A stretch of 64,000 nucleotides of DNA from Anthoceros angustus. Lineage: Eukaryota > Plantae > Anthocerotophyta. Shown in pieces: positions 1 through 44,756 of the stretch (position 1 is its first letter; the number at the start of each line of letters is the position of its first letter). The notes under the pieces are model-generated. The model was not told where the DNA came from and did not search any database. It saw only the letters and a program-made list of their open reading frames with translations. Position numbers and translations under genes: made by a program. The stretch lies in contig MU008202.1 in NCBI GenBank assembly GCA_010909165.1, positions 1 to 64,000 of the forward strand, read 5' to 3'.

Positions 1-1152
1 GATCGTGCAATGGTGGGTTACGGAGAACAGCATGCACGAAGGCCGTCATGAGTATACCAAGAGATTTTGCCACCGAATCGTGCGGACAAGAATGCTCTCA
101 CAAAGGCGGAAGCGTCACATCTCGATCACTTTGTGTCAAGTGAGACCTTTTGTATTCTTTCATATGGGTTTGCCTGACGAGAGAGCACACTTATGTGAGA
201 ACCCAAGAGCTCATAAAGACCAAGTTCCTATTTGAACTCCACCATATGCAAATCGCTACTGAATAACGAGGGCTCAAATTTCACCACCTTGAGGCGCGAG
301 GAGAAACGTTCCACCATACAATATGGTCAATGATATTAACCCCAAGACCATGTTCCGAAGTTGAGGATGATCCGCTGAGTCCATGCCAAAGCATTAGTTC
401 TTGACCAATTGGAGATTCTGACACGGACGGTGTATTGGAGATCCTAACCTACCGGGTTTTCAAGGCATGTTTGAAGATAGCTCCCAACCAACGTCCGACG
501 GGACTAGAAGGAAAAACCGCAGCGAACGACCATGTTTTGTCAGCTTCGGCTTCCAAGTCTTTTGTGGGCAAGCTCTCAAAATCCCGGCATGCCTCTTCCA
601 GTTCTCCACATTTTGTAAACATGTCCACCAGGCAGGTGGCAACCAGTGTCTTCTAGCTGTCCTCTTCCCATAATCTGTCAGTGCGTCTGCCAGCCTGTCT
701 TAAAGAAACCTGCTTGCACAGGCCTTGAGAAGGCTAAAGGAGCCACGAGCAGGCCCTCCTGCTCCATTTCCCATTTCAACCAAGAGACTCTGGAGGCTTC
801 ATGATCTTCCAGAATATCTGCTCATGTTAAACATGGACTTACAAGCGGGACTTCCAACTATACAGCCGGATACACAGCTCAAAGAGTGAAGACAGATGGC
901 CGTGTTTGCGGGCACTTAGGGCAGACGCGCAGCTCCCGTCTGATGCAAAACATGTCTGATGCTAATCACCATGGTGGTCAGGATAGGAGTGTAAACATGC
1001 GCACTCAACGCTGCGTCTTAGAATTGGTGGTGTGAGAAACATCCGCCTGTGCCACATCCGGGCCCGTGCCCTGTGACAAACCACAACTCTGCGGGTAAAA
1101 TCCAAAGCACCGGCTGTCTGGAGGCGGATTGTGTGCGCGCTACTGAGTCCCC

Positions 1153-1163
1153 CAATGTGGGAT
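1153..1163 (-). promoter_or_regulatory. USE-like snRNA promoter element, unit 1 (TATA and RNA body replaced)
   Basis: Minus strand ATCCCACATTG versus plant USE consensus RTCCCACATCG. Same spacer as the other units, but no TATA follows. Confidence 0.55.
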
Positions 1164-2468
1164 AATTTGCCACAAGAAGTCTGGATCCTGGATCGTTCCT
1201 AACAACCACATCCTGTCATGGCAGCTTGTTGCCAGACGCGATGGATGTGTTTGAACTGGTAGCTCAACTGCTGTACCTAGATTTCTCACAAAGCTTGAAA
1301 GGAGTGAATCTTTCAGGTTTTGTCAGTACCCCTGTGTCTGCAGACTGCAATTACTCCGTATTTCTACCAGAAATAATCCTTCCTTCTACAGGCCTCTTTG
1401 TTTAGGTTCTCTAAGTTCATTTTACGGCCAGGCTGGGCGAGGGTGTGCTTTCTACCTCGTTGGGGTAGGATGGGAAACTCAGCGGTATGAATTCACGATA
1501 ACAACTTTCTTGGCCTCGGACAGTAGTTTGAGATTACTGTAGATGAGTCTTTCAATGCTACAGAGTGAGCTGTAGAGACATAGGTCTTGTCTCTCAAGTT
1601 TTGTTTGTGGTGCAAGAAAGCAGCATTGCTGTTGCCACTTCTGATTATCCTTGTAGGTATGTATCATTATCACTCTGTTGCTATGGACCGCTGTAGAAGG
1701 TACGGTGATGCTCCCAACGCAGGTTGGATTGCAAGGGCATCCTGAAAGCACTTCCTTCTTTGGTCAGCTTCACATTGCAAGATGCAACCAAAGCCTGATC
1801 ACATACTTCATACAGCCTCAAGGTGCCGGACACATCCTCCTTTCTTGCGATTCCGAGCTCTTCCGGCTCCAATTCTGCAAAAACTTGGGGAGGGTTTCAG
1901 CTGGAAATCTAGAACAGAACCAGGACCAGGCTCAGCAGGCCCTCGGTTGTGATTCAGCACAAGTTGCTCAGACGGCATATTGAGGTTTGCAGCTGATTTC
2001 CTGCACCAGCAAATGTGCAGTCCAAAAATTTGCCTCGGTGGAGATGTAACACCTTTCCTCCTCTGGTACCAAGAGACCTTAAGGGAATTGCACGAGCTAC
2101 CGGACTCCTGTGTACGTTTGACACCTAATTAAATGTGACTGCGCAGAGAGCAAAACAAGGCTATCACGCCTGCAACCTGACCTTCCTCGAGTTCGAAGGC
2201 CCAGAATGCTTCTCAACCCTCTTCGGTCCAGGAATGGAACTTCGACATGGCCTCAGCCACAAGGATCCTTGCCATAGGATCCTGCAACGTAGTCAGTTCT
2301 TTTTCTCACCGTTCTGCCCTATCTGCTATGCAGGTGGCTGGACTCCTCCTATTGTAACGGCTCTAGATCGCAGCGAATCGGAACTCGGCATCGGCGACGA
2401 CAAACGTCTCAATGAAATCAAGATGCTTGGAAATATGCGCACTCTCGATCCTGCTTAACATTGGTGGT

Positions 2469-2606
2469 GTAGGGCCGACTTGAACAAGTTGGGCCCCTTC
2501 CAAAATTAGATATGTAACAATGTAGGGCTCACGAAAGCTAGCCCTATTCCAAAATTTGCAGATAGAGTGGGTTGCAGCCGTGAGGTGTGCACGACCACTA
2601 ACCCAC
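2469..2606 (-). ncRNA. Putative Sm-class small RNA, unit 2 (two Sm-site + hairpin modules)
   Basis: 5' stem GTGGGTT...AACCCAC; AATTTTGG (2556-2549) then TAGGGCT..AGCCCTA hairpin; second AATTTTGG (2507-2500) then GGCCC..AACTT..AAGTCGGCCCTAC. 5' end uncertain. Confidence 0.55.
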
Positions 2607-2623
2607 GAACAGACACGGTCGGC

Positions 2624-2673
2624 CATATGATACCGGATTGTGTGCACGCTACTAGAGTTCCCCGATGTGGGAT
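2624..2673 (-). promoter_or_regulatory. USE + weak TATA, unit 2
   Basis: Perfect-consensus ATCCCACATCG (2673-2663), then 35 bp to TATG (within TATCATATG). Confidence 0.6.
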
Positions 2674-3397
2674 AATTTGCCGCATGAAGTCTGGAACGTT
2701 CCCAACAACCACATCCTGTCATGCCTGGAACACATATGGTAGTGCACCGTGGGGGTTGGCTGGTGCATATAAAACCGGCTTACTTCCTGAGCAGGTCCCC
2801 AGGAGAATTACCATCTCATAGTTCTGAAACCTCAGATGCTCCTGGTTGTGTGCAGCATTTAGGAGTGTGCCCCAAGGCAGGCAGCCGAGAGGCAGCTACA
2901 TGAAACTAAGCAGGAAAATACAGAAAATGCAACTGTGCAAGAAGGCAAGGCACGGCTGCAGCCTGTCCCACACATGCATAAGCTTGCTGGAAGGCACATA
3001 CGTCACAGAAGTGAGTGTAGTCCTCCGCCTTCCTCTTGCATGGCCCGGATATCGTTCTGGAAATAGTCTGTCATTTTCAAGGTATGTTGGATCCAGCCGG
3101 GAGCGATGCAGCAGAAAGGGCCGGCAGCTTCTGCTTAGGTCTCTTCAGCATCTGCTCCTTGCCTGCCTTCGGCTTCCACGGCTTTCGTGGGCAAGCTGTC
3201 AAAATCCCGGGTGCCTCTTCCAGTTCACCGCATTTTGTAAACGTCTCCACCGGGCAGGTGGCAACCAGTGCCATCTGGCCGTCCTCTTCCTATAATCGCC
3301 AACGCGATGCGCCACTCCCGTCTGACGCAAATGGACCTAGTGATCAGGTTAGATTGCGTGGAGAGGTGCGCTTTCAATGCTGCTTAGAGGTAGTGGT

Positions 3398-3490
3398 GTA
3401 GGGCCGACTTTCAAGTTGGCCCCATTCCAAAATTCTGGAAAAATGATAAGAGAAGGCAAGTTAGAGAGCTGAGCCAAAACTTGTCCTTCT
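3398..3490 (-). ncRNA. Putative Sm-class small RNA, unit 3 (~92 nt)
   Basis: AGAAGG(A)CAAGTT...AACTTGCCTTCT stem; Sm-type AATTTTGG (3434-3427); GGGGCCAACTT-GA-AAGTCGGCCCTAC 3' hairpin. Confidence 0.65.
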
Positions 3491-3511
3491 ACCAATTCAA
3501 ACAGAAAACGG

Positions 3512-3557
3512 ATTATATGATAGCGGATTGTGCTAAATGAGTTCCCCAATGTGGGAT
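3512..3557 (-). promoter_or_regulatory. USE + TATA, unit 3
   Basis: ATCCCACATTG (3557-3547), 29 bp spacer, TATAAT (3517-3512). Confidence 0.6.
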
Positions 3558-4222
3558 AATTTGCCACATGAAGTCAGAAACGTTCCCATCACATCCTGTC
3601 ATGGCAGCTGGGACCCTCATCCAGTCAACCCAAAGCCAACCAACTCAGGATCCGCTGCCGGACTCCCAACTTACAACAGTGCCCATCAAGTACGACCCTC
3701 TCTGACCGATACTCCCACTGCTGAATTGCACAAACCCGACAATCTCGAGCGCTCCCACTGCGAATCCCGGAATCCCTACGGCAAGGGCTAGCTCAAGGCA
3801 GATGCTTGTGCCTTCGATTCCTAACCGTCCCTCGCTGCGATCAATCATGCTCGTCGCAATTGGAAGATTATAACCACTGTGCGAGGGATGGAAGAACGTT
3901 CCTGAGTATGAAGACCCAGAGTGAGCTTCTCAACCCTTTACGGTCCAGGACTGGAACCTCGACATGGCCTCAGCCACAAGGGTCCTTGCAATGGGATCCC
4001 TGTACCGTAGTCATTTCTTTTTCTCACCGTTGTGCCCTGTCTATGCACGGGTTGGACTCTTCGACAACTGTAACGGCCGCTCCAGTTAAGCGAAAATTTG
4101 CTGGTTGAACCTGGCCAAGGGACGTGTACAAACGGATCGGAACTCGGCATCAGCAAACAACTAACACCTCATGCAAGAGTCCTGGAAATGTCCGCACTCT
4201 TTATGCTGCTTCAATTTGTGGT

Positions 4223-4313
4223 GTAGGGCCGACTGCGGCAAGTTGGCCCCGTCCCAAAATTATCCAACAGACACAGGCCAACACATTAGAGATGATGTCT
4301 ATATCTCCCAGGA
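4223..4313 (-). ncRNA. Putative Sm-class small RNA, unit 4 (~90 nt)
   Basis: Unrelated 5' domain (GAGAT..ATCTC stem); AATTTTGG (4261-4254); GGGGCCAACT-TGCCGC-AGTCGGCCCTAC hairpin. 5' end estimated from TATA. Confidence 0.55.
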
Positions 4314-4334
4314 ATATTTCAAGCAGGCATCGGG

Positions 4335-4383
4335 TATATGGTAGCGGAGTGTGAGCATGCTACTCACTTCCCCAATGTGGGAT
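4335..4383 (-). promoter_or_regulatory. USE + TATA, unit 4
   Basis: ATCCCACATTG (4383-4373), 34 bp spacer, TATA (4338-4335). Confidence 0.6.
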
Positions 4384-5432
4384 ATTTAACCGCATGAAGT
4401 CTGGAACGTTCCCGTAACAACCACATCCTGTCATGGCAGCTGGTTGCCAGACGCGATGGATGTCTAGAACTGTAGCATAACTACTGTACCTGGCGTTCTC
4501 CAAAGCTTGGAAGGAGTGAATCTTTTAGGGTCCTGAGGGACAAAGGATTTGCACATTATAGTTATCTTACAAGAGAAACAGTCATTGTGGAAATTTTGAG
4601 GGTCTGCGTTGCTTGCTACAAGGAAGCTCAGATGCTCCTGGTTGTGTGCATCATTTAGGTGTGCCCCAAGGCAGGCAGCCGAGAGCAGCTACATATAACA
4701 AAGCAGGAAAATACAAAAGATGCAACTGCGCAAGAAGGCAAGACACGGCCGCAGCCTGTCCCACACTTGCATAAGCTTGCAGGAAGAGCACATACGTCAC
4801 ACAGTGAGGTGCAATCCTCGCCTTCCTCTTGCATGGCCCGGATATCATTCTGACGTAGTCCGTCATTTTAAGGTATGTTGGATCCAGCCAGGCGCCGCAG
4901 CAGAAAGGGCCGGCAGCTCCTCCTTGGGTCTCTACAGCATTTGCTCCTTGCCTACAGCTTCGGCGTCCACGGCTTTCGTGGGCAAGCTGTCAAAATCCCG
5001 GCGTGCCTCTTCCAGTTCACCGCATTTTGCAGACGTCTCCACCGGGCAGGTGGCAACCAGTGTGCCGTCTGGCCGTCCTCTTCCTATAATCTGTCAGTGC
5101 ATCTGCCTGCTCTTCTTTGAGGAACCAGCACTTGCACAGGCCTTAGGAAGGCCGAAGGAGCCACGAGCAGGCCCTCCTGCTCCATTTCCCATTTCAAACA
5201 AGAGCTGCCGTAAACACACAGCCATCTGCCTTTATACTTTGAGCTGTGTATCCGGCTGCGCAGATGGAAGCCCTGCTTGTCTTGCAAGTCCATGTTTAAC
5301 ATGAGCAGAAACTCTGGGAGATCACAAGCCAACGCCCGGCAGACGCAACTCGCGTCTGATGCAAATCAACAAGGCGATCAGGGTAGATGCATGGAAACAT
5401 CCGCACTTTCAATGCTGCTTAGATCTGATGGT

Positions 5433-5523
5433 GTAGGGCCGACTTTTGCAAGTTGGCCCCGATCAAAATTTACAAAATGGTTTGAGTGGAAAGCTTGTCG
5501 TAGATCAGCCAAAACTTCCCTCT
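5433..5523 (-). ncRNA. Putative Sm-class small RNA, unit 5 (~90 nt)
   Basis: GAGGGAAG..CTTTCCACTC stem; AATTTTGA (5470-5463); GGGGCCAACTT-GCAA-AAGTCGGCCCTAC hairpin. Candidate start A lies 29 nt after the TATA. Confidence 0.65.
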
Positions 5524-5545
5524 ACCGGCCAGCTCCAGAGACAGG

Positions 5546-5597
5546 TTATATATGATAGCGGATTGTGTGCATGCTACTGAATTCCCCAATGTGGGAT
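5546..5597 (-). promoter_or_regulatory. USE + TATA, unit 5 (best Pol II snRNA-type geometry)
   Basis: ATCCCACATTG (5597-5587), 34 bp spacer, TATATAA (5552-5546). Confidence 0.7.
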
Positions 5598-6215
5598 AAT
5601 TTGCCACATAAGCTTCTCAGGATGAAAATGGCCGGTTTTATATGCGCCAGCCAACCTCTAGGTGCACTACCACTAGTTGGTACAGGAAGGTGCATGCTGG
5701 TACAAATGTATCCTGCTTAATGGTCTCACAGTCAGAAACGTTCCCGTCACAACCACATCCTGTTATGGCAGCTGGTTGCCGGACGCGATGGATGTGTCTG
5801 AACTGGTAGCTCAACTACTGCACTTAGATTTCCCACAAAGCTTGCAGGGTGAATCTTCAGGTTTCCTGAGGGACACATATTTTACAGTCATCTTACAAGG
5901 AGAAGCAATCATCGTGAAAATTTTGAGAGTCTATATTTGCTTGCTACAAGGAAGAGGCGAGGGAAGCTCTCATCTGCTGTGACATAATTAAGCACGATAC
6001 ATTTGTACCAGCATGCACCTTCAAACACACGGACACCTGCCTTTACACTTTGAGCTGTGTATCTGTCTTGCAAGTCCATGTCTGAGCAGAAACTCTGGAA
6101 GAACACAAGCCCACGCCCGGAAGACGCGCAACTCGCGTCTGACGCAACGTCTTTCAAGGCGATCAGGGTGCGTGCGTTGGGACACCCGCAACTTCAATGC
6201 TACTTAGATCTGGTG

Positions 6216-6304
6216 GTAGGGGCTACATTTGCGAGTTGGCCCCATTCCAAAATTTGCAAGCTGGTTTGAGTGGAAAGCTACAAAGGTGCACCAAAACTCC
6301 CTCT
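6216..6304 (-). ncRNA. Putative Sm-class small RNA, unit 6 (~88 nt, possibly decaying)
   Basis: Close paralogue of unit 5; AATTTTGG (6254-6247); 3' hairpin GGGGC..GCCCCTAC with internal mismatches. Confidence 0.5.
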
Positions 6305-6325
6305 ACCAATTACACAAAGAACGGC

Positions 6326-6372
6326 ATATATGATAGCGGATTGTGTGCACGCTGAGTTCCCCAATGAGGGAT
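6326..6372 (-). promoter_or_regulatory. USE (one mismatch) + TATA, unit 6
   Basis: ATCCCTCATTG (6372-6362), 31 bp spacer, TATAT (6330-6326). Confidence 0.5.
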
Positions 6373-8039
6373 AATGTCTCATATAAAGTCAGAAACGTGC
6401 CCGTCACAACCACATCCTGTTATGGCAGCATTTTACAGTCATCTTACAAGGAGAAGCAAGCATCGTGAAAATTTTGAGAGTCTATGTCGCTTGCTACAAG
6501 GGAGAGGCGAGGGAAGCTCTCATCTGCTGTGAGACAATTGAGCAGGATACTTTTGTACCAGCATGCACGTTCCTGTACCAACTGGTGGTCGTGCACCCTA
6601 GAGGTTGGCTGGCGCATATAAAACCGGCCATTTTCATCCTGAGAAGCTCCTGCAGAATTACACATCTCATACTTCTGGAACCTCAGATTCGACTACATTT
6701 GCCTGGTTGCAGCATTTGGGAGTGTGCCTCCAAGGCAGCAGAGAGGTGATGCATGAAAAAGGAAACTGCGCAAGAAAGCAAGACGTGGCTGTAGCCTAGT
6801 TTTGCCTGCACATGAGGGCCTGTAAACACCGAAGGGCCTCCTGTCCCATGCCATACAGGGAATAGCCACTATCATCGTTTTTCACGTCACCACATTTATT
6901 CACGATGTCCATCAAAGAGGGCAGAAGCAACTTCTAGGCGGTGGTAGTTTGTGTACATGTTTCCTAAACTGTTGGCTACAAGGGCCTCCTTGAGGTGGTG
7001 CTCTTTAACCTGCCTGTGATGAATCTGCTTTCCTTCTCCAAACCTGGAGTGCCCACACTTGCATAAGCTTGAAGGAGGAACACGTATTTCACGGAAGTGA
7101 CTGCAGTACCCTTCCTCTTGCATTGCCCTGACATCTTTCTGACATGGTCGTCAAATACTCTGCGGACTTCCTTCCAAGCTGCCAGACTTCGCATACATGT
7201 GCACCAAACTGATGGCAACAACTAAGCACATAACCTTCATGACCTCGTTCTCTAATCCGCACTTGAAGCTGCCTGCTCTACACTTGCAGACGCCCTGTTG
7301 AGAATAGATATCTTGCTATCATGGCAGTCCAAAGTCATAGGCATTTGTAGGGTGTGTTGAATCCAGCCAGGAGCACTGCAGTAGGAGGGGCCAGCGGCTC
7401 CTGCTGGGACTTTTCAGCAGATTCTCCTTTCCAGCAGCTTCAGGTTCCACATCTTTGGTGGCGCTATGAAAATCCCGGCGTGCCTCTTCCAATTCACCTC
7501 ATTTTGTAAACATGCCACCAGGCAGTTGCCAACCAGTGTGTCATCTAGCAGTCCTTTTCCCATAAGCTGTGAGTGCATCTGCCTGCCCTTCTGTAAGGAA
7601 CCAGCGGTTGTCAGGCCTTGAGAAGGCAAAACTAATACAGTAAGCCACAATCAGGCCCTCCTCCTCCACTCGCCCACTTCGAACAAGAGCCTGTTGACCA
7701 AGCCCTTGCAGAGCATAGCCAGCAACCAGGGATGCCCCACCGTGAACTCATGCACCTTGCCCCTCACTTCATGTACCTTCCAGCATCCTGTCATGGCTGC
7801 AGCTGCAAGACGCGAAGCAGCTGGTTGCAGCCCTTCAGCCTTGTGGGAGGAGAGGACAGTTGAAAGCTCGGAAGGAGCGGGTGCATGAACATGTTTTAGG
7901 CCAGCTGGAACGATAAGCCCTGATTTGTTTGCCTGCAATGGCTTGATGGAGGACATGTATGCAAAGACTAGTATGGCAGCTTGGAGATGCTCAAAGAGTG
8001 TTTGATGGACTTGGTCAAGAAAATGGATGTTGTGCATGC

Positions 8040-9990
8040 CAATCCCTCGGTTTCCTCCTCCTTTGTTAGCGAGAATGCTCTATCGCCCTTCCTCCCTCCA
8101 ATTCACAGACAAGCTCGATCACTAGGGCGTCTCGCACACCCGCCTCCGTTAATTAACGTCTCCAACCGCCCGGTGCGTGGGGATCTCAACGAGGAATGCT
8201 CTGCGTGAGGCACAATTCGCCCCTTTTACATCAGGCGTCCTGCCCCCATATTTTCAGTCCTAAAAGCATTATCGTGAAGAGCGCGCCTACAATTAGCGAT
8301 CTCGGTCGTGGCACCTATCCAAATTCCATTCCTAGGATGCTATCACCTATTTGCCCTCGCTATCTGCGCGCCTTCCCGACTTGGCACTTTGGCCCTTCCC
8401 GACAGCGCTGGCCCCGTCCTCCACTGCGCCTCCACGAGCCCTCCTTCCTCGCTTGGATCGACAAGTCCTCCCAGGACCTCCACCTCCTGCTTCTTTGGAC
8501 GTCCTCTTGCACCTAATCGGGTATGCCTTCCCAGCTTCCTCCTCTCCATGCCGCCCGGGTGCCATGACATGGCCTTGACATGGGCTTGCGCTTTTCTCAT
8601 TTTGGCCGTCTATTCTTGAGGACTATTACGGGCTCTTCATCCACCACGGACTTCTTCCTCCGTTAGCTCCTCCAAAATCGCCTCCATAATAGGGGCCAAT
8701 CCCCACACTCGGGCACGGTGGAAGAAGTATCACTTGGTCCTCACTTGCATAAGGTAAGCCCTGGTCCCTCCTATTCCCACGCACATGGATGAAGTTAAGC
8801 CTGGCGTTCCCCATTCACATATAGACCGAGGAACATAAGTTTCCTCATCCATATGCCTCAACATAATAGGACCTCCTGCCATGGTGGTGCTTACCCCTCC
8901 CAAGTGGACTACCCCGGCACTTTGATCCATGCCTTGAGATGCCACGTCGCCTCACATTGCGCTCAGCAGGAGTTGGGTTTTCAAGGTCGGTGCTTTTCCC
9001 CTAGTGGTGGCGGACTCCACGGCCGTCGCTTTGTTAAACTCGTAGGTGTTTCGGCTACCGCAGTTTGCTCCTTCTTCTCCGCGGTAATTCCTTCCACTAC
9101 CCCATCATGGACTTGCTACTCCTTTTCCCTTCTCCTTCCTGGCTCGGCCATCGCTCCGCTTATGCCGGTCCGCCAACATGGGCCTTCTCCACAGGCGCCT
9201 CTTGCTCTTGGACTGCAACAATTCCCCGCATTTCTTGATTTGCCTCATGGGCATCCTTGATCACAGGCCATGGCGCTTCTTGACTCGTCATGGTGCAACT
9301 CCTCTTGGGCCCTAGCAAATCCTCCACGAATCTTGACCCTCATCTCCTCCTCAGGGGCCCGCTTATCTTCCTCCAATTGTTTCCGCTTAGCCTCCTCCTC
9401 ATTAGAATCGGGCCTTCACCACTTCCTCTTGCCGCCCTTGCATCTGAGCCATGTGAGGGCCAGTGTAGCTTGGTCCGGCAAATCCGGCGGGCGGATCATA
9501 GATGTGGTTAGTTCCTGCAAATCTACTTGTTGAGGAGGCCTCGCGCCAGACGCCATCCCCCTATCCAACACCTTCCTTCCCAGTAGGGTGCGCACCCTAA
9601 CCAATTCTGCTACGTCGACCTCTGTCGCCAATGGAGTTCCCTTGAAAATCTCTTCCCATCCTGAGGAGGGGTCTGCTACTGGGGTCAACCCTAATCCTTC
9701 CGGGGTCGGTTCATCATCTGCATCTAGGTCAGCAAAATTGTCTTCCTCGGACCGCGCCTCTTCCTCCGCCAAATCCATCTGCCGTTTGGCCTTCATTTTC
9801 TTCGCTTTTTCCTGCGGCCTTAGCGCGCCGACACGGTGGCGCCGTCCACCTCCCTTCTTTGTTGAGGCCGCTGCCTCCCCGGCCTTTCTCTTCTTGCTTG
9901 CCCTCCTTTTCCTCTTGAACTACCCGTCGCCACGGACTCCCGGTTGATCTTCCTCTATCTCCTCCTTGGACTCTTCCTTTCCACTTCACC
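8040..9990 (-). mobile_element. Degenerate transposon-like remnant, copy A
   Basis: Co-linear with 11810-13420 (e.g. shared 'CCTAGGATGCTATCACCTATTTGCC'). Broken minus-strand charged/coiled-coil ORF ('EEEMRVKIRGGFARAQEELH'). Family not identifiable. Confidence 0.55.
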
Positions 9991-10324
9991 TCCCTAAGCT
10001 TCTACATGTGGAGGCACAATTNCTCCTTGTGGCCGAATTGGAGAAGGTGGTTGGCATTGAGAACCGGAATTGAGCGTGTGGTGGGTGAGGGAGAGGATGC
10101 ACGCCGCAGACGGGACTGGCCCGCATCCGGCTGTAGATTCGAGTGAGAGCGGCGCCATCCCGCTTTGTTTAGAGTTACCGGTGTTGATGTTGTGTTTGTT
10201 TTGGTGACCGACCCATAGTTTTTGGGTGAGCACGCTCTCAATAAAGCGGCCACCTTTTCATTCGAGTTCCCGAACCCTTCCTCAAACCCTATACCATATG
10301 CACATGAATGCTCACATACCTTGA

Positions 10325-10690
10325 TCCTCATTGTAAACCGCGTGTTGTTGTAAGGTATGTATGTCCGTTGTAAAAGCCTTGTAAAACTTGACAATGCGTT
10401 GTAAACCACTTCCCATTGTTAGTAGACCATGGGCCGTTGTAAAGAAAATCGTTGTAAACAAAAGTGATGGTATTTACTACGGCGTTGTAACAAAGACATT
10501 CATTGTTGTAAAATCATTGCGGATCTATGCGTGTTGCAACCAAGAAGAGCCCTCGTAGTAAAGTAGCATATGCCACGTCATCGAATAGCCATGGCTAAAC
10601 ACTCCCGTAGTAAAACACCAGAGCTCTGTAGTAATAATTGGCTATACAAGAAAATAATCCATGAACCATGAAGCCCGCTTGTAAATCGAC
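10325..10690. repeat. Cluster of about ten (C/G)TTGTAA(A) motifs, resembling DNA-transposon subterminal repeats
   Basis: Motif at ~10331, 10347, 10367, 10379, 10398, 10435, 10451, 10483, 10506 and 10678. No CACTA terminus seen. Confidence 0.4.
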
Positions 10691-11809
10691 TTGAGCCTCG
10701 AAATTGCTCTAAAAAACAGCCTATAGTAAAAGGCCCGCTTTTCCTAATGCAATTAGTCTTGCGGCGTATAAGAAAGGCCACGGCAATCAAAATTTGTTGA
10801 GTTAAACGTGACGATCTGCTTTGCTCATATCCGTAAACATGCTACTACAAAATGATTAAGGTAAGAGACTTCGGTGCCTCGCCTCACCCCGGCCTCGTTT
10901 CCTCGGCCCACTTCGTAAATATAGTGTGTATTCAAGTAATGAGTGAGACAATATTCTTGTCCCAAGTAGTCTCTAAATTTAGACTTTCATTTTGAATATT
11001 TTCATGAGTATTTTAATTTTAATTTTAATCTCATGTAGAAGTGATATATTTGTATATCTTGTAAAAAATCGACATTTAGAGAAGAAATAAATTAGTTGAA
11101 ATTATTAACGTGCTATATGAGGACAAAATAACAATGTTTCGTCTGGCTTCGGCTCAAGTCGTGAGTACTCAAGCATGCTTGCAATTTAACCGGCCAATCC
11201 CACTGCTGCAATCAGCTCAGGCCTACCGCGTTCTGGGTGCTACTCATGTGGGGTTCTCACTACGGGTAGTTATGGCTACCGAGGGTCCCACACCAAACCC
11301 TAGTAACTTATTTCAAACGCCGCTGGATCCTCGCCACGGGCCGCGACCGCTTCCCGGATCAGTTTTATTCTACACTTCACACTTCATGCTCACACGATTT
11401 CTAGGAACGGAGTTCCTAGGACACCTCACACCCGCTTCCACACACACACCCACACAAAAAGGCGCCACCACACGATTTCTGGGGAACGCTGCTTCCCTCA
11501 GGTACTTCCACCGCCAAAGACCGGTTTGAGTTTCACAATCCACTCACATCAATTTCCCACCGCCAATTTTCACAATTTCTCCTCCCACTCCACTTTCGAT
11601 CTCACACCGTCGCATCGTGACATGCTGGCGACCTCCCCTTCGCCCGATCTCTCTTTCTCCTCCTCTTCTCGATGCACACACAAGCTTCCAACCATCCACT
11701 CAACACTTCCGGGTTTCGAACACAACTATCGTGGGATCAAAGGTGAAGGCAGAAGAACCCCAAGGCCACACAAGCGTTACGAGCAAGCTCCTGCACCCGC
11801 CCCGCCCAA

Positions 11810-14450
11810 TCCCTTGATTTCCTCCTCCTTGTCGTGGATTGCTCTATCATCCTCCTCCCTCGGGCCAGTGAGCAAGCTCGACCACCCCTGAGCTGCCTCA
11901 CGCGCCCGCCTCCGTCAACCTGGACTCCAACCGCCACAGCAGGTGGGGATCTCAACCGGAAATTATCGTATGGTAGCACAATTTGCCCTTTGTAGTAGCA
12001 TCACCGGGGCGCCATAGCCCCGACTGGTTCTAAAATACCTATCGCAAAGACGCCTACAATTCCGAGCGATCTTAGGTCCAGTGTGGCATCCCCAATCAAA
12101 TTTCCTTCCTAGGATGCTATCACCTATTTGCCTACGCCATCACGCTGCTCTTCCGACGGCTTGGCCCGGCCCTTTCGCCCTCCGCTCCGCCGCGAGCTCC
12201 TCCGCTTGTCCGATCTAATGTGTCCTCCCACAAGACCTCCACCTCACTATCGCTGGTGGATGTCAACGGAGAGGTATCACTGGCTCTCTACCCGCAAATT
12301 GCCGCCATTCTCAGGATTAATATGTGCTCTTCTTCCACCATGCTCGGACTTTTCTTCCGCCGCCTCCAAAATCGCCCGCAAATGCCTCGTTGCTGATCTG
12401 CCCCCAGAGCTGCTATGGCCGAAAGTTGCTCACCATGCGCCATGCTTGAGTTGGGCTCCCGATGCTCTGGTGGCTCATACATGGTGGACTCCACGATCGG
12501 GCCGTCTGCTCAGCAACTCGCGGTGTATTTCTGGCTGTTCCTTCCTTTCCTTCTAGTCCTTCCACTACCATCGTGGACCCGGCGCCGCTTCCTCTTTCCT
12601 CCTTCTCCTTTTTGGCCACGTGCCTCGCCGCCTCGCTTATACCGTCCGCCAACTTATGGGCTCTCCATGAGGTTGCCTCTTGCCTTGGGCTGCAACAATT
12701 CCCCATTTCTTGACCCGTGGCATCCTTGATCTCGGGCCATGAGCTCTCACCATGGACTCCAGCCCTCGAGCCCCGCGCAATCTCCCGAATTTTACCCTGC
12801 CTCCTGGTCCGCTTATCTTCCTCCACCGCTGCTTAGCCTCCTCCTCCTGATCGGGCCCTCACCACTCGCCGCCTCTTGCACGTTGAGACGAGGGGCTAAA
12901 CGCAGCCTTGGTCCAGCCAAGTCCGACCGCCCGGATCATAGATGGGTTAGCTCCCGTGAAATACTTGTTGAGGAGGCCCGCCCGGACGCCATTCTGCCGA
13001 GCACCTTCCTTCCGAGGGTGCGCACTCTAACCACCCGCCGACCTCTCGCTGCCGGAGTTCTGGAAAATCTCTTCCATCCCGAGGAGGGGTCTCGCCGAGG
13101 TCAACCCTAATCCTTCCGGTCGGTTCGTCATCCGCATCCGTGGTCAAGTCAAATTTTCCTCGATCGTGCCTCCTCCGCCGAATCAATCACGCTTGCCTCC
13201 TCATTTTCTTCGCTTTGCGCACGACGCCGCTGACCAGACGCTGCCCACCTTCTCGCCTTCTTTTGTGAGCCTCACCGCCTTCTCCCGGCTTTTTCTTCTT
13301 GCCGGTGGCAACTCCTTTTCCTCCTCGAATCGCCCATTGCCACCGACTCCCAATCACAATTCCTCCTCTATTTCCTCCTCGCTCCACTCACCTCACCTCA
13401 CCCGGCCTGGCTGAAGGAGGCCACACCCACCTCCAGTATGAAGCGTATGACACAGTGAACCAAAATGGCGAATTAGAGAAGGACGAGGGAAGAGGAGATC
13501 AAATAACCTCTCTTCACAGCCTTGTCAAAGAGAATTCGCCCAATCGATCCTCGCCCCTTGACAACTTCATGGAGAAACAAGAAGAAATGGTCGACAAATA
13601 GTCCCGCTTGTGTCAGAGAAAACATAGAGCCACTTGGCTGCACTCCATCACTGTCGATACCAATTCTCGGGTCAACCCATTGGCTCCCGAATTACGCTGC
13701 CTGACTGTTGGCCCGCACGCGTGCCTTTTCCGAGAAGGTCTGATTACCAAACCACCTTCCTCCTTTTCACGCTCATACACTCTCCGACCACCCAGTCCCA
13801 ATCCCAGGCTTCTAATTCCCCCGCCTGGCCGCCATTGTCGGATGGTAGACTCTGTACTGGGCCCCAAGTTCGAGATAATTCCACCGCTTCTCCATGAAGC
13901 CAAGCTAACTCCTTCACCACCCCTCATTTCCGGACCTTCCAATGGTCCATGTTTGGCCATTGTCACAATTTCTGGCCTTGGGCGCCATGCCTCTGCAGCA
14001 ACCTCCCTTGCCTGCAGTGCCTCGAATCGGTGATGCCTCGCCTCAAAATTCATGGCGGGCCGGGCCTCCCGTGGTTCCTACCTCCTGCCAATCCACACAC
14101 TGTAGAGTCACCCCTCAGCTGGCCCCTCACTAGCGAGGGTTTGGTCGTCCTCGCGATTGCCCTCTAAGCCCTCTAGCGGATCAGCGGTACTATCCTCGAC
14201 GGCCCTCGTGACTCGCCATTCAGGCCTGGCCTCACTCCGCCTCCGCCCGCCATTGCGCTCCATCGTTTGAACTTACTGCCATTTTTTACATTCGTCCAGT
14301 TACGTGCCCGCTCCCCTACTACGATCGATTCCACGACTACTTCTCCTTCGACGACCGCTCCTTCCTTCCACGACCGCCCGTCCCCTAGTCGCCGACCGTT
14401 CTCAAACATAACCTTTCTCCCCATTTCGGTCCGCAACTACACACTTATTC
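11810..14450 (-). mobile_element. Degenerate transposon-like remnant, copy B (possibly a Gypsy accessory ORF)
   Basis: Homologous to 8040-9990 and extends further 5' with broken ORFs. No RT/integrase motif seen. Confidence 0.5.
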
Positions 14451-25062: not shown

Positions 25063-27840
25063 TTAGTCCACATGTGGGGATAGAGGCACATAGCCTTCTT
25101 TCTTCATTTTGGGGAGGAGCTGATTCAGCTTTGCATAGATAGCGTCACTCTCGGGGTGCTTTTGATCCTCGACCAGAAAGCTATGCACCAGGCCGTCCAT
25201 GTCTGTCCACCAGCTCTGGCCTGGCTGCTTCCAGGCCCTGATTTCCTTTCTCCTGTCCTGCATCTCCTGAGCCTGCTCCCACATCTGGGCAGCGGCGTAT
25301 ATGTTTGACATCAACACATATGCTTCTGCGTCCTTTTGGTTTAGCTTCACTGCTTCATGAAAAGCATGGAGTCCCACCTCCACATTGCTCCACTTCCGGC
25401 AGGCACCCAACAGAGTGTGCCAGACGGCGGCATCAGCGACAGGCATTGTGCTCACCAGAGCTAATGCTTCGTTCACTTCGCCTGCACGACCCAGGAGATC
25501 CGCCATGCATGTGTAGTGCTCCACTGTAGGAGGGATGCCGTACTGGCTGCTCATGGCCTCGAAGAGATCTTGCCCCTTGTCCACCAGGCCAGCATGACTG
25601 CATGCTGTGAGTAGGCTGACGAAGGTGATGCCGTCAGGGTGGGTGCCGTCCTCTTGCATTCTGTGAAACAAGTCGAAGACCTTGCCACTGTCTCCTTGGC
25701 GGCTATATCCTGCAATCAGTGCACTCCAGGTGCCCACGTTTGGTTTGGGCAATGCATCAAAGACCTGCTGTGCGTCCACCATGCTCCCGGACTTTGCATA
25801 CATGTTTATCAAACTGACAGCTATAGGGAGATCCCCTTCGAGCCCTTCCTTTTCAATCTCTGTGTGGAGCTGCCTTCCCAGCTGCAGAGCAGCCACGTCT
25901 GCACATGCCTGCAGGAGGCACACAAATGTCACAGAATTCGGAGGAACCCTCCCTTCTTCTTGCATAGTCCTGTAAAGGCGGATTGCTTCCTGCCCCTTTC
26001 CCTGATGGGAATATCCTGCAATCATAGCATTCCATGTCACAACGTCTTTCTGACCAAGCCTGTCAAACACACCCTGTGCATCTTGCAAGCTGCCACACTT
26101 TGCATACATGTTTACCAGACTGCTGGCTACAAACACATCAACGTCAAGTTCACATTCCCTAATCTGTGCATGAAGCTGCTTCCCCTTCTCCAAAGCCAGG
26201 GTGCCCACAGTTGCGCATGCCTGGAGAAGGCATGCAAATGTCACAGAGTCGGGTGCCACGATGCCTTCTTCTTGCATATTCCTGTACAGATGAAGGGCTT
26301 CCTGCCCCATGCCCTGCTGGGAATACCCTCCTATCATGGCATTCCACGTTACCACATTCTTTACACCAAGTCCATCAAAGACACCCTGAGCATCCTGTAA
26401 GCTGCCACACTTGGCATACATGTTCACCAAACTGCTGGCTATGAAAACATCAGCCTGAAGACCTTGTTCGCCAATCTGTGCATGAAGCTGCTTCCCCTTT
26501 TCCAAAGCTGGGGTGCCCACACTTGCACACGCCTGGAGAAGGCACAAAAAAGTCACGGAATTGGGCACAGCCAGGCCTTCCTCTTGCATAGCACTGTGCA
26601 GAGAAAGAGCTTCCTTGCCCATACCGTGCTCCGAATATCCTGCTATCAGAGCGGTCCATGTCACCACATTTTTTTGATGAAGTCCATCAAACACGCCTTG
26701 AGCATCCTTCAGGCTTCCACACTTGGCATACATGTTTACCAGGCTGCCACCGACAACAACATCACCGTCAAGTCCCCGTTCTCGAATCTCTAAATGGAGC
26801 TGTTTCCCCTTCCCCAAAGCTGGAGCACCCACACTTGCACATGCCTGCAGGAGGCACACAAAAGTCACAGAGTTCGGTGCAATGACGCCTTCTTCTTTCA
26901 TATCCCTGTAAAGATGAAGAGCTTTCTGTCCCATCCCCTTCTGGGAGTACCCTGATATCATTGCATTCCATGTGACCACATTCTTTTGTCCAAGTCCATC
27001 AAACACCCTTTGAGCGTCTTCCAAGCTGCCACACTTGGCATACATGTCCACCAACGAATTACAAACAAACGGATCAGGCTCAACCCCACTGGCCACCACA
27101 TCAGCATGCACCTCCTGTCCAGTTTTCAAGTCTGCTCCTCTTGCACAAGCCTGTAGGGCTGCGACAAACACATGGCAATCCGGCTTCACACTCGACCTGC
27201 GCATCCGATGGTACAGACCTATGGCCTGCTTATCTTGCCCATGTTTAGCATGAACAGAAATTATAGCAGACCACGTGAAGGCATCTGGTTTGTCCACCAC
27301 TGCAAACACATCCAACGCGTCTTGCAACCTGGCATGAGAAGTATACATTCGCATGATGTTGTTGCCCAGGAACGTATCCGATTCATACCCCGCTTTCACA
27401 GCCAGGGCATGCACACGACGACCCAGAACCAGATCCCTCTGAGCCATACATTGCTTTAGGACAGCATAAAAGAGAGACTGAGAAACATGACACTCTGTCC
27501 GCACCAGAGTTCCCAGAGACTCAACAGCCTCACTGAGCTGCTCGTTCCTACATAGTTGGCTTACGGTTTCAGCAGTTACCCCCCGTTCGAATACTGCAGG
27601 CCTACGAGGCTCAAAATCATCCGGCCCGTTCCAGCTGGAGATAGGAGAACGCCGACCCATCTGCATATCCAGAGCAACCAGCTGCGCATGCACCCTCGCC
27701 GGCGAATAGCTCTTGTTGGAACTCTTCTCGTGATGCCTGTTCTCCCACCAAAGTGTATGGTCCAGGAACAACTCCCCAGCCAGACATCCTGTTGGACGGG
27801 CTGCGTTCATTTGCAAGCTTGTGGCCCCCAAGAGCTTCAC
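25063..27840 (-). CDS. PLS-class PPR protein with E/E+ domains and truncated DYW (organellar RNA-editing factor type)
   Basis: 925-aa ORF with repeated P-L-S triplets (SLVNMYAKCGSL..VFD..NVVTWNAMI), PG box 'KQPGQSWWTD', ending 'GYVPLSPHVD*'. True start uncertain: 27840 is GTG and the first ATG is 27810; an upstream exon is possible. Confidence 0.95.
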   Translation of the reverse strand: MKLLGATSLQMNAARPTGCLAGELFLDHTLWWENRHHEKSSNKSYSPARVHAQLVALDMQMGRRSPISSWNGPDDFEPRRPAVFERGVTAETVSQLCRNEQLSEAVESLGTLVRTECHVSQSLFYAVLKQCMAQRDLVLGRRVHALAVKAGYESDTFLGNNIMRMYTSHARLQDALDVFAVVDKPDAFTWSAIISVHAKHGQDKQAIGLYHRMRRSSVKPDCHVFVAALQACARGADLKTGQEVHADVVASGVEPDPFVCNSLVDMYAKCGSLEDAQRVFDGLGQKNVVTWNAMISGYSQKGMGQKALHLYRDMKEEGVIAPNSVTFVCLLQACASVGAPALGKGKQLHLEIRERGLDGDVVVGGSLVNMYAKCGSLKDAQGVFDGLHQKNVVTWTALIAGYSEHGMGKEALSLHSAMQEEGLAVPNSVTFLCLLQACASVGTPALEKGKQLHAQIGEQGLQADVFIASSLVNMYAKCGSLQDAQGVFDGLGVKNVVTWNAMIGGYSQQGMGQEALHLYRNMQEEGIVAPDSVTFACLLQACATVGTLALEKGKQLHAQIRECELDVDVFVASSLVNMYAKCGSLQDAQGVFDRLGQKDVVTWNAMIAGYSHQGKGQEAIRLYRTMQEEGRVPPNSVTFVCLLQACADVAALQLGRQLHTEIEKEGLEGDLPIAVSLINMYAKSGSMVDAQQVFDALPKPNVGTWSALIAGYSRQGDSGKVFDLFHRMQEDGTHPDGITFVSLLTACSHAGLVDKGQDLFEAMSSQYGIPPTVEHYTCMADLLGRAGEVNEALALVSTMPVADAAVWHTLLGACRKWSNVEVGLHAFHEAVKLNQKDAEAYVLMSNIYAAAQMWEQAQEMQDRRKEIRAWKQPGQSWWTDMDGLVHSFLVEDQKHPESDAIYAKLNQLLPKMKKEGYVPLSPHVD

Positions 27841-33937: not shown

Positions 33938-35321
33938 AGCTCAAGCTCTCAGACAAAACAGAAGTCTCGCAACCTTCCAAGCAGGACTCCACCTCCAAGC
34001 CTCCAAGCGCAGATCTGAGCAACAGGCCAGGGCACGAGAATGTGCTGCAGCAGAGCTCATCTTTAAGGCCTTGGCTCTCAGCCCCACGCGGCGACGGGGC
34101 ACTGCGCTCTGCGCGTAAACAGAAGCGTGCTGCACCAGGTACAACCCCCCACAGCTCCCCTCCATCACGTTCCTCCATTTCCTGGGTATATCTCGAATTT
34201 GGTTCCACCTCCCATGTCCAACTCGCGGTCGAGATCCGTGGATCCCAGCCGCTTGGCGCGCGCTGCCGCGGTTACATGCTCATCCGCTGCACCGGATAAT
34301 TCCCTGCAGATGCAGATGCAGATGCAGCAGCAGCAGCAGCTCCAGATCCTCACCGACCGCGCTGGGAAATGAATGCCCACCAATGCCCGCTCCGCTGGCA
34401 TCTCCTTTCTTCACGCTCCAATCATCCAACCACCCTCCGCACAGCACTGCAGCGGGTACATTTGCACATCGCGTGGGAGGGAACGTCACCGTCAGTAGTA
34501 GGTGGAGCGTGAAGCGTAGGCGCGCAGGCTGTAGCTGTGACGTCGCCCTCACCGGGCCGGCCTTCCACGCCTGATCCCATTGGGCCCGGGATCGGCGCGA
34601 GCATATCCGGTGCCCCGGCCTGCTCGGTGGGCCAGGCTGGTAACTCTTTCATTATCCCGTCTACAGGCCTTCAAGAGAGAATATCGCAGGCGTGTGGCAC
34701 GATATGGCCTCCGTGCCCCCACTACTGTGTAGGCCCTGGCTGCAGCGAGGGCGGAAGCAGCTCGCAAGTTGCCTAGCGGCCGTGTAGGTGTGTACCGAGC
34801 CCGCCTTGGGCTGGTGCAACGAACCTAGGTCTTCAGCTTGCTTGCCCGGCCTGCTCCCGGACCCACCGACACGCTACCTTTTAACTTTATATTTAGTTGC
34901 TTGCCTGACTGCGTCGCGTTACGACCAGGTGCTGACGCGAAATGGATGATCCCAACGCGCTTGCCGCACTCAACATCCGCGGTGCGCTGATGAGGCGACG
35001 GTTGACAGTGGTTGGAAGCGACAAAGCAGCGGCTCATGCGAGGCGAGCCTGGGAGGTCCGGTGCCGGACCTGGGTAGGTCCGTGGCCGGACCTGCCTGAA
35101 TCCGGTGCCGTGGGCCCCTGTCCTGTGACACGGGAAACGGACTCGGTTTTTGCCCGTGACGCCGCAGTCCTGGGACACTAACGGGCGGGCGTTGCCTCGC
35201 TCCTCGCTCCTCGCATCGTTGTTGGGTCGAGTGCGCGCTGACACAAGTCCGTGGCGTGCATGCGGATGCGGATGCGCATGCGGACAAGTCCCATGGTGGT
35301 GGTGGGTTGCGAGATTGCAAC

Positions 35322-38300
35322 ATGGCCTTTGCGGGGCGGGCATTGGCCGTCGGGAGGCGGGGCTGTCGGTGGGGATCGATGCAGGTCCCGCCGTGGCGTC
35401 CTTCGGGGTTGCCATCCCCAGCCTGCTTCTGCTGGCAGAGGCCCGGGGTGGGCATCCACGGGAGCGGCATGGCGGAGCAGTCCAAGAAGGGGCACCCGCA
35501 GTCCGTGCCTCTGAGCAAGCTCTCGGACAGCTTCATGGACGGGACCAGCAGCGTGTTTCTGGAGGAGCTGCAGAGGACGTGGGAGAAGGACCCGGGGAGC
35601 GTGGACGCGTCCTGGGACATTTTCTTCCGGAATTTCACGGGGCAGGGGAGGGCGGGGGTTGCGGTGTCGGCGGCGTCGGCGTCGGGGCAGAGCATCCAGG
35701 AGAGCATGAACCTGCTGCTGCTGGTGCGGGCGTACCAGTTCAGCGGGCACAACAAGGCGAACCTGGACCCGCTAGGGTTAACCAAGATGCATGCAGGGAT
35801 GGTGGATTTGGATCCGGCGCAGTACGGGTTCAAGCCGGGGGATCTGAACAGGGAGTTCTTCCTCGGGGTTTGGCGGATGTCCGGGTTTTTGTCGGAGAAC
35901 AGGCCGATGCAGAGCCTCAAGGACATTCTGGCGAAGCTGGAGCAGGCATACTGCGGCAGCATAGGGTTTGAGTACATGCACATCCCGGACCGGGAGCGAT
36001 GCAACTGGCTGCGGGAGAGGATCGAGGTGCAGGTCCCGGTGAAGTACTCTCGGGAGCGGAAGGCGGACATCCTGGATCGGCTCATGTGGGGCACCAGCTT
36101 CGAGAATTTCATCGCCCAGAAGTGGACGGCGGCAAAGCGATTTGGGCTGGAGGGATGCGAGACGCTCATTCCCGGGATGAAGGAGCTCATAGACAGGGCA
36201 GCGGACAGAGGCGTGGAGAGCATTGTGATCGGGATGCCGCACCGGGGGCGGCTCAATGTGCTGGGGAACGTGGTGCGGAAGCCGCTGCGGCACATTTTCA
36301 GCGAGTTCGGGGCCGGGATCAAGCCGGCCGCAGTGGAGGCCGGGGATTACACCGGGAGCGGGGACGTCAAGTACCATCTGGGGACGTCCTACGACAGGCC
36401 CACCAAGAGCGGGAAGCGGATTCACCTCTCGCTGGTGGCCAACCCTAGCCATCTGGAGGCTGTGAGCCCTGTGGTGATCGGGAAGACCAGGGCCAAGCAA
36501 TACTACGGCAGGGACAAGCAGCGGCTGAAGCACATGGCTGTGCTGCTGCATGGGGACGGGAGTTTCTCCGGCCAGGGCGTGGTGTACGAGACCTTCCATC
36601 TCAGCGACCTGCCCAGCTACACCACCGGCGGGACTGTGCACATCGTGGTGAACAATCAGGTGGCTTTCACCACCGATCCCAAGTACAGCCGCTCCTCGCC
36701 CTACTGCACCGACGTTGCTAAGGCTCTCAACGCTCCCATCTTCCATGTTAACGGCGACGACGTGGAGGCTGTGGTGCGTGCCTGCGAGCTGGCCGCCGAC
36801 TGGCGGTGCCAGTTCCACTCCGATGTGGTGGTGGACATTGTTTGCTACCGCAGGTACCTAATAATCTCTACGTCGCTTTCCTAGCCGTCATCACCCACAA
36901 AACCAATGCATCTCGCACACACTGACTGTCTTGGCTCAAAGATCACTTCTCAGGTCATGGACAGGCATTTTCTCAAGATGTTGATTGCTCTTGCCTTGAA
37001 AGCGTGAAGGGCCACCCTTGCTCACTCTGCTGCATCTTAGGTTTGGACACAATGAGATTGATGAGCCGGCCTTCACTCAGCCTACGATGTATCAGGTGCG
37101 TGTGTACTCGTGATGATTGTGAAGAGGACATGACAATCAAGATTCTCTCTCAACTGCAACAACTGCTTGCTGCTTTCCACAGGTGATCAAGAACCATAAG
37201 CCGGCCCTGGACATTTATGTGAAGAAGCTCACGGAATCTGGGGAAATGTCGAAGAGCGACATTGAGAAGATGCAAGACAAGGTTATGGCCATTCTCAATG
37301 ACGAGTTCAACAACAGCAAGAACTACCTTTCCAAGACTCGGGACTGGCTGGCAGCCTACTGGTCGGGATTCAAGGGCCCTGAGCAGCTGTCTCGGATCAA
37401 GAACACTGGGTAGGATTCTCCACTCTTCTCCTTCACAAGCCTTTCTGCTCACTCTTCTTACCAAGCTGTGCACGTGTTCTAGAGCTGAGCATGATTTCTT
37501 GGTTCAGAGTGAAACCCGAGGTTCTGAAAAGCGTGGGCCAGCAAATTTCGAAGCTGCCTGCCACTTTCACACCTCACAGAGCCATTAAGAAAGTGTATGA
37601 ACAACGTGCACAGATGGCTCAAACTGGAGAAGGGGTGGACTGGGCTTTTGGAGAAGCACTGGCTTTTGGGACCTTGCTGACGGAAGGTAATCATGTGCGA
37701 CTTAGTGGCCAGGATGTAGAACGGGGTACTTTCAGTCACAGGCATGCAGTGGTGCATGATCAAAAAACGGGCCAGAAATATTGTTCTCTTGTCAACGTTG
37801 TGGACAAGCAAGACCCTGAGATGTTCACAGTCTGCAACAGGTCAGCACTTGCCACTGTCCTGCTAGGCACATGAGATGTTGCTTCTTCTCTGATTGAGAA
37901 TGTGCTGCAGTTCTCTTTCCGAGTTTGGAGTGCTGGGCTTCGAGTTGGGCTACTCTATGGAGAACCCCAACTCGCTTGTTCTTTGGGAAGCACAGTTTGG
38001 TGACTTTTCCAACACTGCTCAGGTGATATTCGACCAGTTTCTCAGCAGTGGAGAGACCAAGTGGTTACGGCAGAGCGGCTTGGTAATTCTGCTTCCTCAT
38101 GGCTACGATGGTCAGGGTCCAGAACACTCCAGCGCAAGATTGGAGCGTTTTCTACAGGTACTCAACGGCGCAATGGCCCTGCTTAATTGAAGCCATATTT
38201 CTGATGACAAAACACGTGTGTGTGCGCAGATGTGTGATGACAACCCACTTGTCATTCCTGAAATGGAGCCAGCCATGCGGAAGCAGATTCAAGAGTGCAA

Positions 38301-44675: not shown

Positions 44676-44756
44676 GCAGCTTTGGCCGAGTGGTTAAGGC
44701 GTGTGCCTGCTAAGTACATGGGTTCGCCCGCGAGAGTTCGAATCTCTCAGGCTGCG
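44676..44756 (+). tRNA. tRNA-Ser (anticodon GCT)
   Basis: Full cloverleaf: acceptor GCAGCTT/AGGCTGC, D-loop AGTGGTTAA, anticodon arm TGTGC-CTGCTAA-GTACA, long variable arm, TTCGAAT T-loop. TTTT follows at 44775-44778. Confidence 0.95.

Follow-up and report, generated by a model that had tools for sequence, protein, structure and literature searches.

An array of candidate Sm-class small RNA genes with plant snRNA-type promoters in Anthoceros angustus

Eukaryotes share an almost invariant set of Sm-class small nuclear RNAs (snRNAs), and to our knowledge lineage-specific additions to it are few, namely the SmY RNAs of nematodes, the spliced-leader RNAs and the viral HSURs, with none described in plants. 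SmY RNAs (RF01844) are ~70-90 nt long, carry two stem-loops flanking a canonical Sm site, are restricted to their lineage and are encoded by many clustered copies with snRNA-type promoters. They act in spliced-leader trans-splicing, a process that we do not know of in land plants. Other short Sm-class RNAs work by pairing, U7 with histone pre-mRNA and the HSURs of Herpesvirus saimiri with host microRNAs. Here we describe a locus in a 64-kb stretch of DNA from Anthoceros angustus (Anthocerotophyta; contig MU008202.1, positions 1 to 64,000; hereafter the window), whose minus strand carries, between positions 1005 and 6372, six units headed by an upstream sequence element (USE) of the kind found in plant snRNA genes. 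Judged by their sequence features, five of these units are apparently intact genes and one is dead. On balance, the array is probably a small, lineage-specific family of snRNA-type genes of the RNA polymerase II (Pol II) class, whose products would be Sm-class RNAs of ~90 nt.

Compared with plant U-snRNA genes transcribed by Pol II (U1, U2, U4 and U5; Arabidopsis type), the units share a USE of the RTCCCACATCG type, a TATA box at four-turn spacing, an Sm site with a terminal hairpin after it, a conserved signal immediately beyond the 3′ end and a clustered, multi-copy arrangement, whereas they match none of these genes in sequence or structure, have a shorter body (~90 nt) and a partial 3′ box, and carry a 5′ domain that differs between copies. 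The analogy with SmY that an earlier note on this DNA had drawn holds for the architecture, since the units are likewise short, clustered and lineage-restricted with two stem-loops around an Sm site, but it ends there: kingdom and promoter type differ, and a scan against all Rfam families gave no SmY match. Like the HSURs and U7, the units would specify Sm-class RNAs that are short and combine a constant Sm site and 3′ hairpin with a variable or target-pairing 5′ part. The HSURs, however, are viral, and in U7 the Sm site is non-canonical and the 5′ guide single-stranded, whereas the 5′ part of the units is self-folding and mostly homologous from unit to unit. Reuse of the plant USE, placed ahead of variable hairpins in a lineage-specific expansion of small-RNA genes, is known from the interface-induced MIRNA loci of Cuscuta campestris (10.1101/2022.07.06.498962). 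Those loci combine the spacing of RNA polymerase III (Pol III) genes with T-run terminators and long Dicer substrates, and have no Sm site, whereas the units combine Pol II spacing with short stems, an Sm site and a terminal hairpin, and do not qualify as MIRNA-type loci.

The promoter elements define the array. Searching the window for ATCCCWCATYG returned exactly six exact matches, all on the minus strand as the earlier note had it, with starts at 1163, 2673, 3557, 4383, 5597 and 6372. Relative to the angiosperm USE consensus RTCCCACATCG, the tenth base is T instead of C in five of the six units. A TATA-like box follows the end of the USE after 35, 29, 34, 34 and 31 nt in units 2, 3, 4, 5 and 6, respectively, which bears out the 29-35 bp reported previously; it reads TATA(A/T/C) in units 3-6 and weakly, as TATGG, in unit 2, and there is none in unit 1. 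The composite pattern TCCCACATYG-N20-40-TATA has 4 matches against 0.01 expected. When the start is set 28-30 nt past the TATA box, where the starts proposed earlier (3490, 5523 and 6304) also fall, the predicted RNAs measure ~86-91 nt, or ~140 nt for unit 2, in line with the lengths first suggested. The distance from the TATA box to the Sm site is 71-83 nt in all five units despite the variable sequence in between. Directly upstream of the USE lies a further conserved block of ~55-60 nt (..GCTGCCATGACAGGATGTGG..GGGAACGTT..GACTTCATGTGGCAAATT; 3558..3614, minus strand, in unit 3), which is common to units 1, 2, 3, 4 and 6 and which in unit 5 is displaced to ~5720-5772 by a 110-nt insertion.

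In Arabidopsis, the longer USE spacing distinguishes Pol II snRNA genes from Pol III genes, in which it is one helical turn shorter, the distances being given from USE to start (10.1101/2022.07.06.498962). The gaps of 29-35 nt in the units are those of the long, four-turn Pol II class. Here we presume that the rule for USE-to-start spacing carries over to the USE-to-TATA gaps of the units. Runs of four or five T residues lie within the first 15-50 nt of the unit bodies and no T run is found downstream of the units, so Pol III would be expected to stop early, which argues against Pol III. By gene anatomy, that is by USE, TATA box, four-turn spacing, canonical Sm site beside a terminal hairpin and conserved 3′ flank, the units qualify for the plant Pol II snRNA gene class; the 3′ box is matched only in part.

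Units 2-6 continue, ~71-83 nt past the TATA box, with the Sm site AATTTTG(G/A) and then with a G+C-rich hairpin, GGGGCC-AAC..GTC-GGCCCT, both as first noted. The Sm consensus RAU(3-6)GR is matched by AAUUUUGG in five modules and by AAUUUUGA in unit 5. Unit 2 has two Sm-hairpin modules in tandem, so that module duplication is a process that happens in this family. The hairpin pattern occurs 4 times where 0.18 matches are expected. The terminal hairpin is a 10-pair helix in which 89.7% of cells pair, as against 31-52% with a slid partner; its loops are different in every copy while the stems hold, and in unit 2 the additional module has one double change (C-G to U-A) and two single changes, yet its helix is preserved. 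We then derived a covariance model from the Sm site, hairpin and flank of all six modules and searched the window with it, filters off; it recovered exactly its six source modules (42-80 bits, E 1e-6 to 1e-14), and its further matches in the 64 kb were noise alone (E 0.9 or more).

After the hairpins comes the conserved 3′ flank CACCA..AAG(C/T)AGCATTGAAAGTGCG, previously described as CACCA..(T/G)AAG(C/T)AGC, which extends further than claimed, to ..CATTGAAAGTGCG. The plant 3′ box has the consensus CA(N)3-10AGTNNAA (PMC5079582). In units 1, 2, 4, 5 and 6 the flank (CACCA..AAGCAGCATTGAAAGTGCG) contains CA..AGT and lacks the terminal AA, the consensus being that of angiosperms and possibly not that of this lineage. 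A second small hairpin of 6-7 bp (CAGACGCG-AGTT-GCGCGTCTG type) is seen on the minus strand at 923-942, 5341-5358 and 6122-6141, ~75-80 nt past the 3′ flank of units 1, 5 and 6, with a degenerate version in unit 3; it may belong to the end signal of the transcription unit or be DNA that was co-duplicated. Elsewhere in the array, at ~1990-2029 on the minus strand, an Sm-like site (AAATTTTTGG) precedes a hairpin CTGCAC..GTGCAG, with no USE or TATA box upstream and no Rfam match, and is probably due to chance.

All six units lie on the minus strand. Unit 1 (1005..1163; USE 1153-1163) is a dead copy, not matched by the covariance model, in which TATA box, Sm site and hairpin are all lost and which keeps the USE, the upstream block and a relic of the 3′ flank (..CACACCACC..AAGACGCAGCGTTGAGTGCG). 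In unit 2 (2443..2673), the USE at 2663-2673 is followed by the weak TATA box from 2627, a 16-bp 5′ stem-loop at ~2606-2567 (z -4.1), a first module whose stem letters differ (Sm site 2549-2556, hairpin 2524-2545), a second module (Sm site 2500-2507, hairpin 2471-2497) and a 3′ flank to 2443; its modules score 76 and 42 bits with the covariance model. Unit 3 (3372..3557) comprises a USE at 3547-3557, a TATA box from 3517, a predicted start at ~3490, a 5′ stem-loop at 3490-3451, an Sm site at 3427-3434, a hairpin at 3400-3423 and a 3′ flank to 3372; it scores 79.9 bits, and its whole predicted RNA folds more stably than shuffles (z -4.0). The corresponding features of unit 4 (4198..4383) are a USE at 4373-4383, a TATA box from 4338, a predicted start at ~4310, an Sm site at 4254-4261, a hairpin at 4225-4250 and a 3′ flank to 4198 (76.6 bits). 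Unit 5 (5407..5597) has its USE at 5587-5597, a TATA box from 5552, a predicted start at ~5523, an Sm site (AATTTTGA) at 5463-5470, a hairpin at 5435-5460 and a 3′ flank to 5407, and scores 80.4 bits. Unit 6 (6193..6372; 73.3 bits), finally, has a USE at 6362-6372 with one variant base (ATCCCTCATTG), a TATA box from 6330, a predicted start at ~6304, an Sm site at 6247-6254, a hairpin at 6218-6243 and a 3′ flank to 6193.

Pairwise comparison of the units revealed an uneven pattern of conservation. Identity is 82-100% in the USE, 64-88% in the USE-TATA spacer, 46-78% between TATA box and start, 38-73% in the 5′ domain (random expectation ~40-47%) and 72-85% in the 3′ module, with 49-75% in the upstream block and 54-77% in the downstream flank. 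The promoter USE and the 3′ module are the best-kept parts, above the intervening and flanking sequence, and the motifs thus stand out from the flanking PPR-derived (pentatricopeptide repeat) DNA. Each of units 2-6 can be drawn with a 5′ stem-loop, beginning at or next to the predicted start and ending 10-16 nt before the Sm site. Alignment scores against shuffles identify the 5′ domains of units 3, 5 and 6 as homologous (z 5.7-10.6) and indicate a remote kinship of that of unit 2 to unit 6 (z 3.7), whereas the 5′ domain of unit 4 is unrelated to that of every other unit (z 0.8 or less). The picture of a swapped cassette therefore holds for one unit in the window (unit 4), and it appears to hold for one paralogue outside it as well. 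Units 2 and 4 have duplicated flanks (90% identity over 477 nt) around different bodies, so the bodies must have arisen by replacement or gene conversion and not by point substitutions.

By comparison with covariance models, the units are not members of any known snRNA family. We scanned with every family in Rfam 15, including U1, U2, U4, U5, U7, U11, U12, U4atac, U6atac, SmY and the spliced-leader RNAs. Over the whole window, at gathering scores, there was no snRNA, SmY or spliced-leader match, and only a tRNA elsewhere was found; over 800-6700, at E up to 10, the sole match was a weak SNORD95 (E 1.1, 1933-1999) outside any unit; and with units 3 and 5 taken singly, at E up to 10 and under the most permissive filters, noise alone was returned, the noise matches in these scans being SNORD95, HOTAIR_2 and bacterial sRNAs. 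No full-length match to a known snRNA was thus obtained at the level of window, array or single unit. Signature motifs of U1, U2, U5, U11, U12, U6 and U4, for which we used the strings that we take to be diagnostic, were likewise lacking from both strands of 900-6600, so the earlier statement that U1, U2, U5 and U12 signatures are absent stands, and the idea of a miniature U1/U11-like RNA found no support in any test. We considered three specific candidates and rejected them: telomerase RNA, given no telomere-template stretch and a spacing of Pol II type; U5, whose invariant loop is absent and whose model gives no match; and a spliced-leader RNA, since the units show no plausible arrangement of an exon donor, with just a GUUUUG lying ~8-11 nt from the predicted start. 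Metagenome scans for the hairpin and Sm patterns yielded nothing related, the sole match (L001) being a chance one inside a bacterial coding region, and when the five 5′ domains were compared with the window by short-word BLAST, only the similarity between units 5 and 6 came up. Exact-protein look-ups of the open reading frames (ORFs) overlapping the array and of the neighbouring PPR gene returned no record, and in a literature search we did not find such a family described in plants.

The family extends beyond the window. Of the sequencing data, which comprise one DNA run and one RNA-labelled run, the latter contains one related contig (388 nt, depth 3.9) from an off-window paralogue, in which a 67-nt stretch between promoter and Sm site is of the same length and diverged, and which has a variant of the hairpin (GTCGGCAC). 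In the DNA run, which has loose contig ends at 3538 and 3393, we noted a further sequence almost identical to unit 2, with 2 differences over 30 nt, and another USE that is followed after 29 nt by TATAATAAAC and then by a different body. At least one more unit of the family is present elsewhere in the genome. Judging by contig depth in the DNA run, the USE-proximal part may be present in ~15 copies, the 3′ module in ~5 and the 5′ domain of unit 3 in ~2, numbers that are consistent with a few more family members, or other snRNA genes with the same promoter, elsewhere.

The sequence itself shows the motifs, their spacing and significance, their relative conservation and the lack of Rfam matches; from transcription onward, each step of the following scheme is our inference. 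The USE and the TATA box about four helical turns downstream would recruit Pol II, by analogy with the U-snRNA genes of Arabidopsis; transcription would begin at a purine ~28-30 nt past the TATA box, and the transcript would be cut ahead of the 3′-box-like signal in the conserved flank. The resulting RNA of ~86-91 nt would consist of a 5′ stem-loop, a single-stranded linker of 10-16 nt, a canonical Sm site (AAUUUUGG) and a G+C-rich terminal hairpin, which makes the products of the units candidate Sm-class RNAs. The minimal signal for assembly of the Sm core consists of an Sm site and the hairpin next to it on the 3′ side, and because this signal is present the RNA would be expected to exist as a trimethylguanosine-capped, nuclear Sm-type small nuclear ribonucleoprotein (snRNP). 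The 5′ stem-loop would be the effector part; it evolves fast, being shared by units 3, 5 and 6, only remotely recognizable in unit 2 and replaced in unit 4. As for the role of the RNA, we would guess that it belongs to an accessory snRNP outside the core set and does not stand in for U1 or U11.

A number of results weigh against such a functional family, and several of them favour a different explanation, in which the units are non-functional relics. Here the ancestor would be an old gene of snRNA type, possibly a canonical snRNA gene that had been truncated or rearranged; it would have been segmentally duplicated together with pieces of PPR pseudogenes, and the copies would now be decaying, their frame being kept by recent duplication and patchy gene conversion rather than by selection on the RNA. 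We consider this the main alternative, albeit on the unlikely side. The array is indeed a mosaic, in which duplications, both direct and inverted, alternate with fragments of PPR pseudogenes. Besides the 90% identity of the unit 2 and unit 4 flanks, it contains the 110-nt insertion in the promoter of unit 5 and an inverted duplicate (5611-5736 and 6523-6648, 93.7% identity), one copy of which is inserted between that unit's USE and its upstream block, so that the region upstream of the promoter has been rearranged. With unit 1 dead, and with units 2 and 6 looking impaired by a weak TATA box and a weakened hairpin (~5 G-C pairs left), the expanded family of the earlier note is weaker than was claimed; the whole predicted RNA of unit 6 shows no fold signal (z +0.1). 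The 5′ domain lacks family-wide conservation of sequence, and the 5′ stem-loop, although drawable throughout as had been claimed, exceeds shuffles in stability in only two of the five units (unit 3, z -3.0; unit 2, z -4.1). The match to the 3′ box is only partial, and among six related sequences the hairpin offers one compensatory pair, a result equalled by 84 of 500 shuffles, so that covariation here is suggestive and not proof. In the RNA-labelled run, whose library type is unrecorded, depth over the units is zero; small non-polyadenylated RNAs are usually missed. The 388-nt contig comprises the body of the paralogue plus >200 nt of promoter and upstream DNA and, because it includes the promoter, is DNA carry-over or read-through and no discrete snRNA. 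Uniform decay, however, leaves unexplained why the USE and the Sm-hairpin module stand at 72-100% identity while spacer and 5′ domain fall to random level, and it does not account for variable loops on held stems or for a duplicate module in unit 2 that folds with changed letters. Furthermore, no canonical snRNA parent can be detected, even in the permissive scans of single units.

Alternatively, the units could encode guide-bearing Sm RNAs. Promoter and Sm-hairpin module would then be a constant carrier for interchangeable 5′ domains, each pairing with a different target RNA in the manner of U7 and the HSURs. The 5′ domain of unit 4, unrelated to the others inside an alignable frame, the diverged stretch of equal length in the off-window paralogue and the held length of the variable part (71-83 nt) all point in this direction. 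We nevertheless think it improbable, since three of the five 5′ domains are plainly homologous and a fourth remotely so, leaving one real swap in the window, for which patchy recombination in a rearranged region would account; moreover, in the folds as drawn the 5′ ends are part of stems and not single-stranded, and no complementary target above chance is present in the window. We would give equally little credence to a land-plant family of Sm-class snRNAs in which a constant Sm-core assembly module bears exchangeable 5′ effectors, each aimed at a different RNA or protein, and which diversifies by module duplication and domain replacement; such RNAs would be natural counterparts of U7 or of the viral HSURs. 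That the units are U6-type Pol III genes, or USE-driven precursors of microRNA-like small RNAs, seems very improbable. Lineage-specific small-RNA families that co-opt the snRNA USE do exist in Cuscuta campestris (10.1101/2022.07.06.498962), and the gap of unit 3 (29 nt) is intermediate, but the other four of the five gaps (31-35 nt) are of the Pol II class, Pol III would already terminate after ~15 nt at the T4-T5 runs early in the body, the units are not followed by a T run, the stems of 12-16 bp are too short for Dicer-like processing, and a canonical Sm site does not belong in precursors of this kind. Even less can be said for a chance co-occurrence of short motifs in repeated DNA. Allowing one mismatch, the USE pattern is found four more times in the window, outside the array, and one of 100 shuffles reaches 10 matches; yet the six exact USEs occupy one strand within 5.2 kb, each in register with those other elements (TATA box, Sm site, hairpin and flank) that its unit retains, and the composite patterns were expected 0.01 and 0.18 times, so that as far as sequence analysis goes this explanation is refuted.

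If the units are expressed and Sm-bound, they would constitute the first plant-specific Sm snRNP and would illustrate the birth of a new snRNA, in which the Sm-hairpin module is duplicated and the 5′ domain turns over. Should they instead be silent relics, the locus would show the decay of a snRNA-type gene in which, as in unit 1, promoter and flanks outlast the body.

The surroundings of the units are rich in PPR-derived DNA. A PPR-derived pseudogene fragment on the minus strand (4935..5093) lies between units and matches repeats of the window's own PPR protein by BLASTP (E 1e-6); copies of it are found at ~541-789, 3163-3297 and 7435-7692. Contig depth at 4911-5101, over this PPR-motif fragment (..AKCGELEEARRDFDSLP..), reaches 7469 in the DNA run, against a baseline of ~12, and 2616 in the RNA-labelled run, because the PPR family in the genome is huge. 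The PPR gene itself (25063-27840, minus strand) is intact and intronless, of the PLS class with E and E+ motifs, and its 925-aa ORF presumably encodes an organellar RNA-editing factor. Within the array, 3712-4115 and 4501-4782 are matched at ~90-95% identity by contigs of the RNA-labelled run (≤2352 nt, depth ≤117), one of which skips 4116-4500; these contigs appear to be transcripts of paralogous genes elsewhere, and the two stretches look like gene fragments. Further along, Pfam scans of ORFs at 7-20 kb returned no family, and the plus strand of 8001-14000 is rich in C and T, with GC skew down to -0.27 and AT skew down to -0.26. On the plus strand the window also contains an ORF with 2-oxoglutarate dehydrogenase E1 domains (35256-36884) and a tRNA gene (44676-44756, 58.5 bits).

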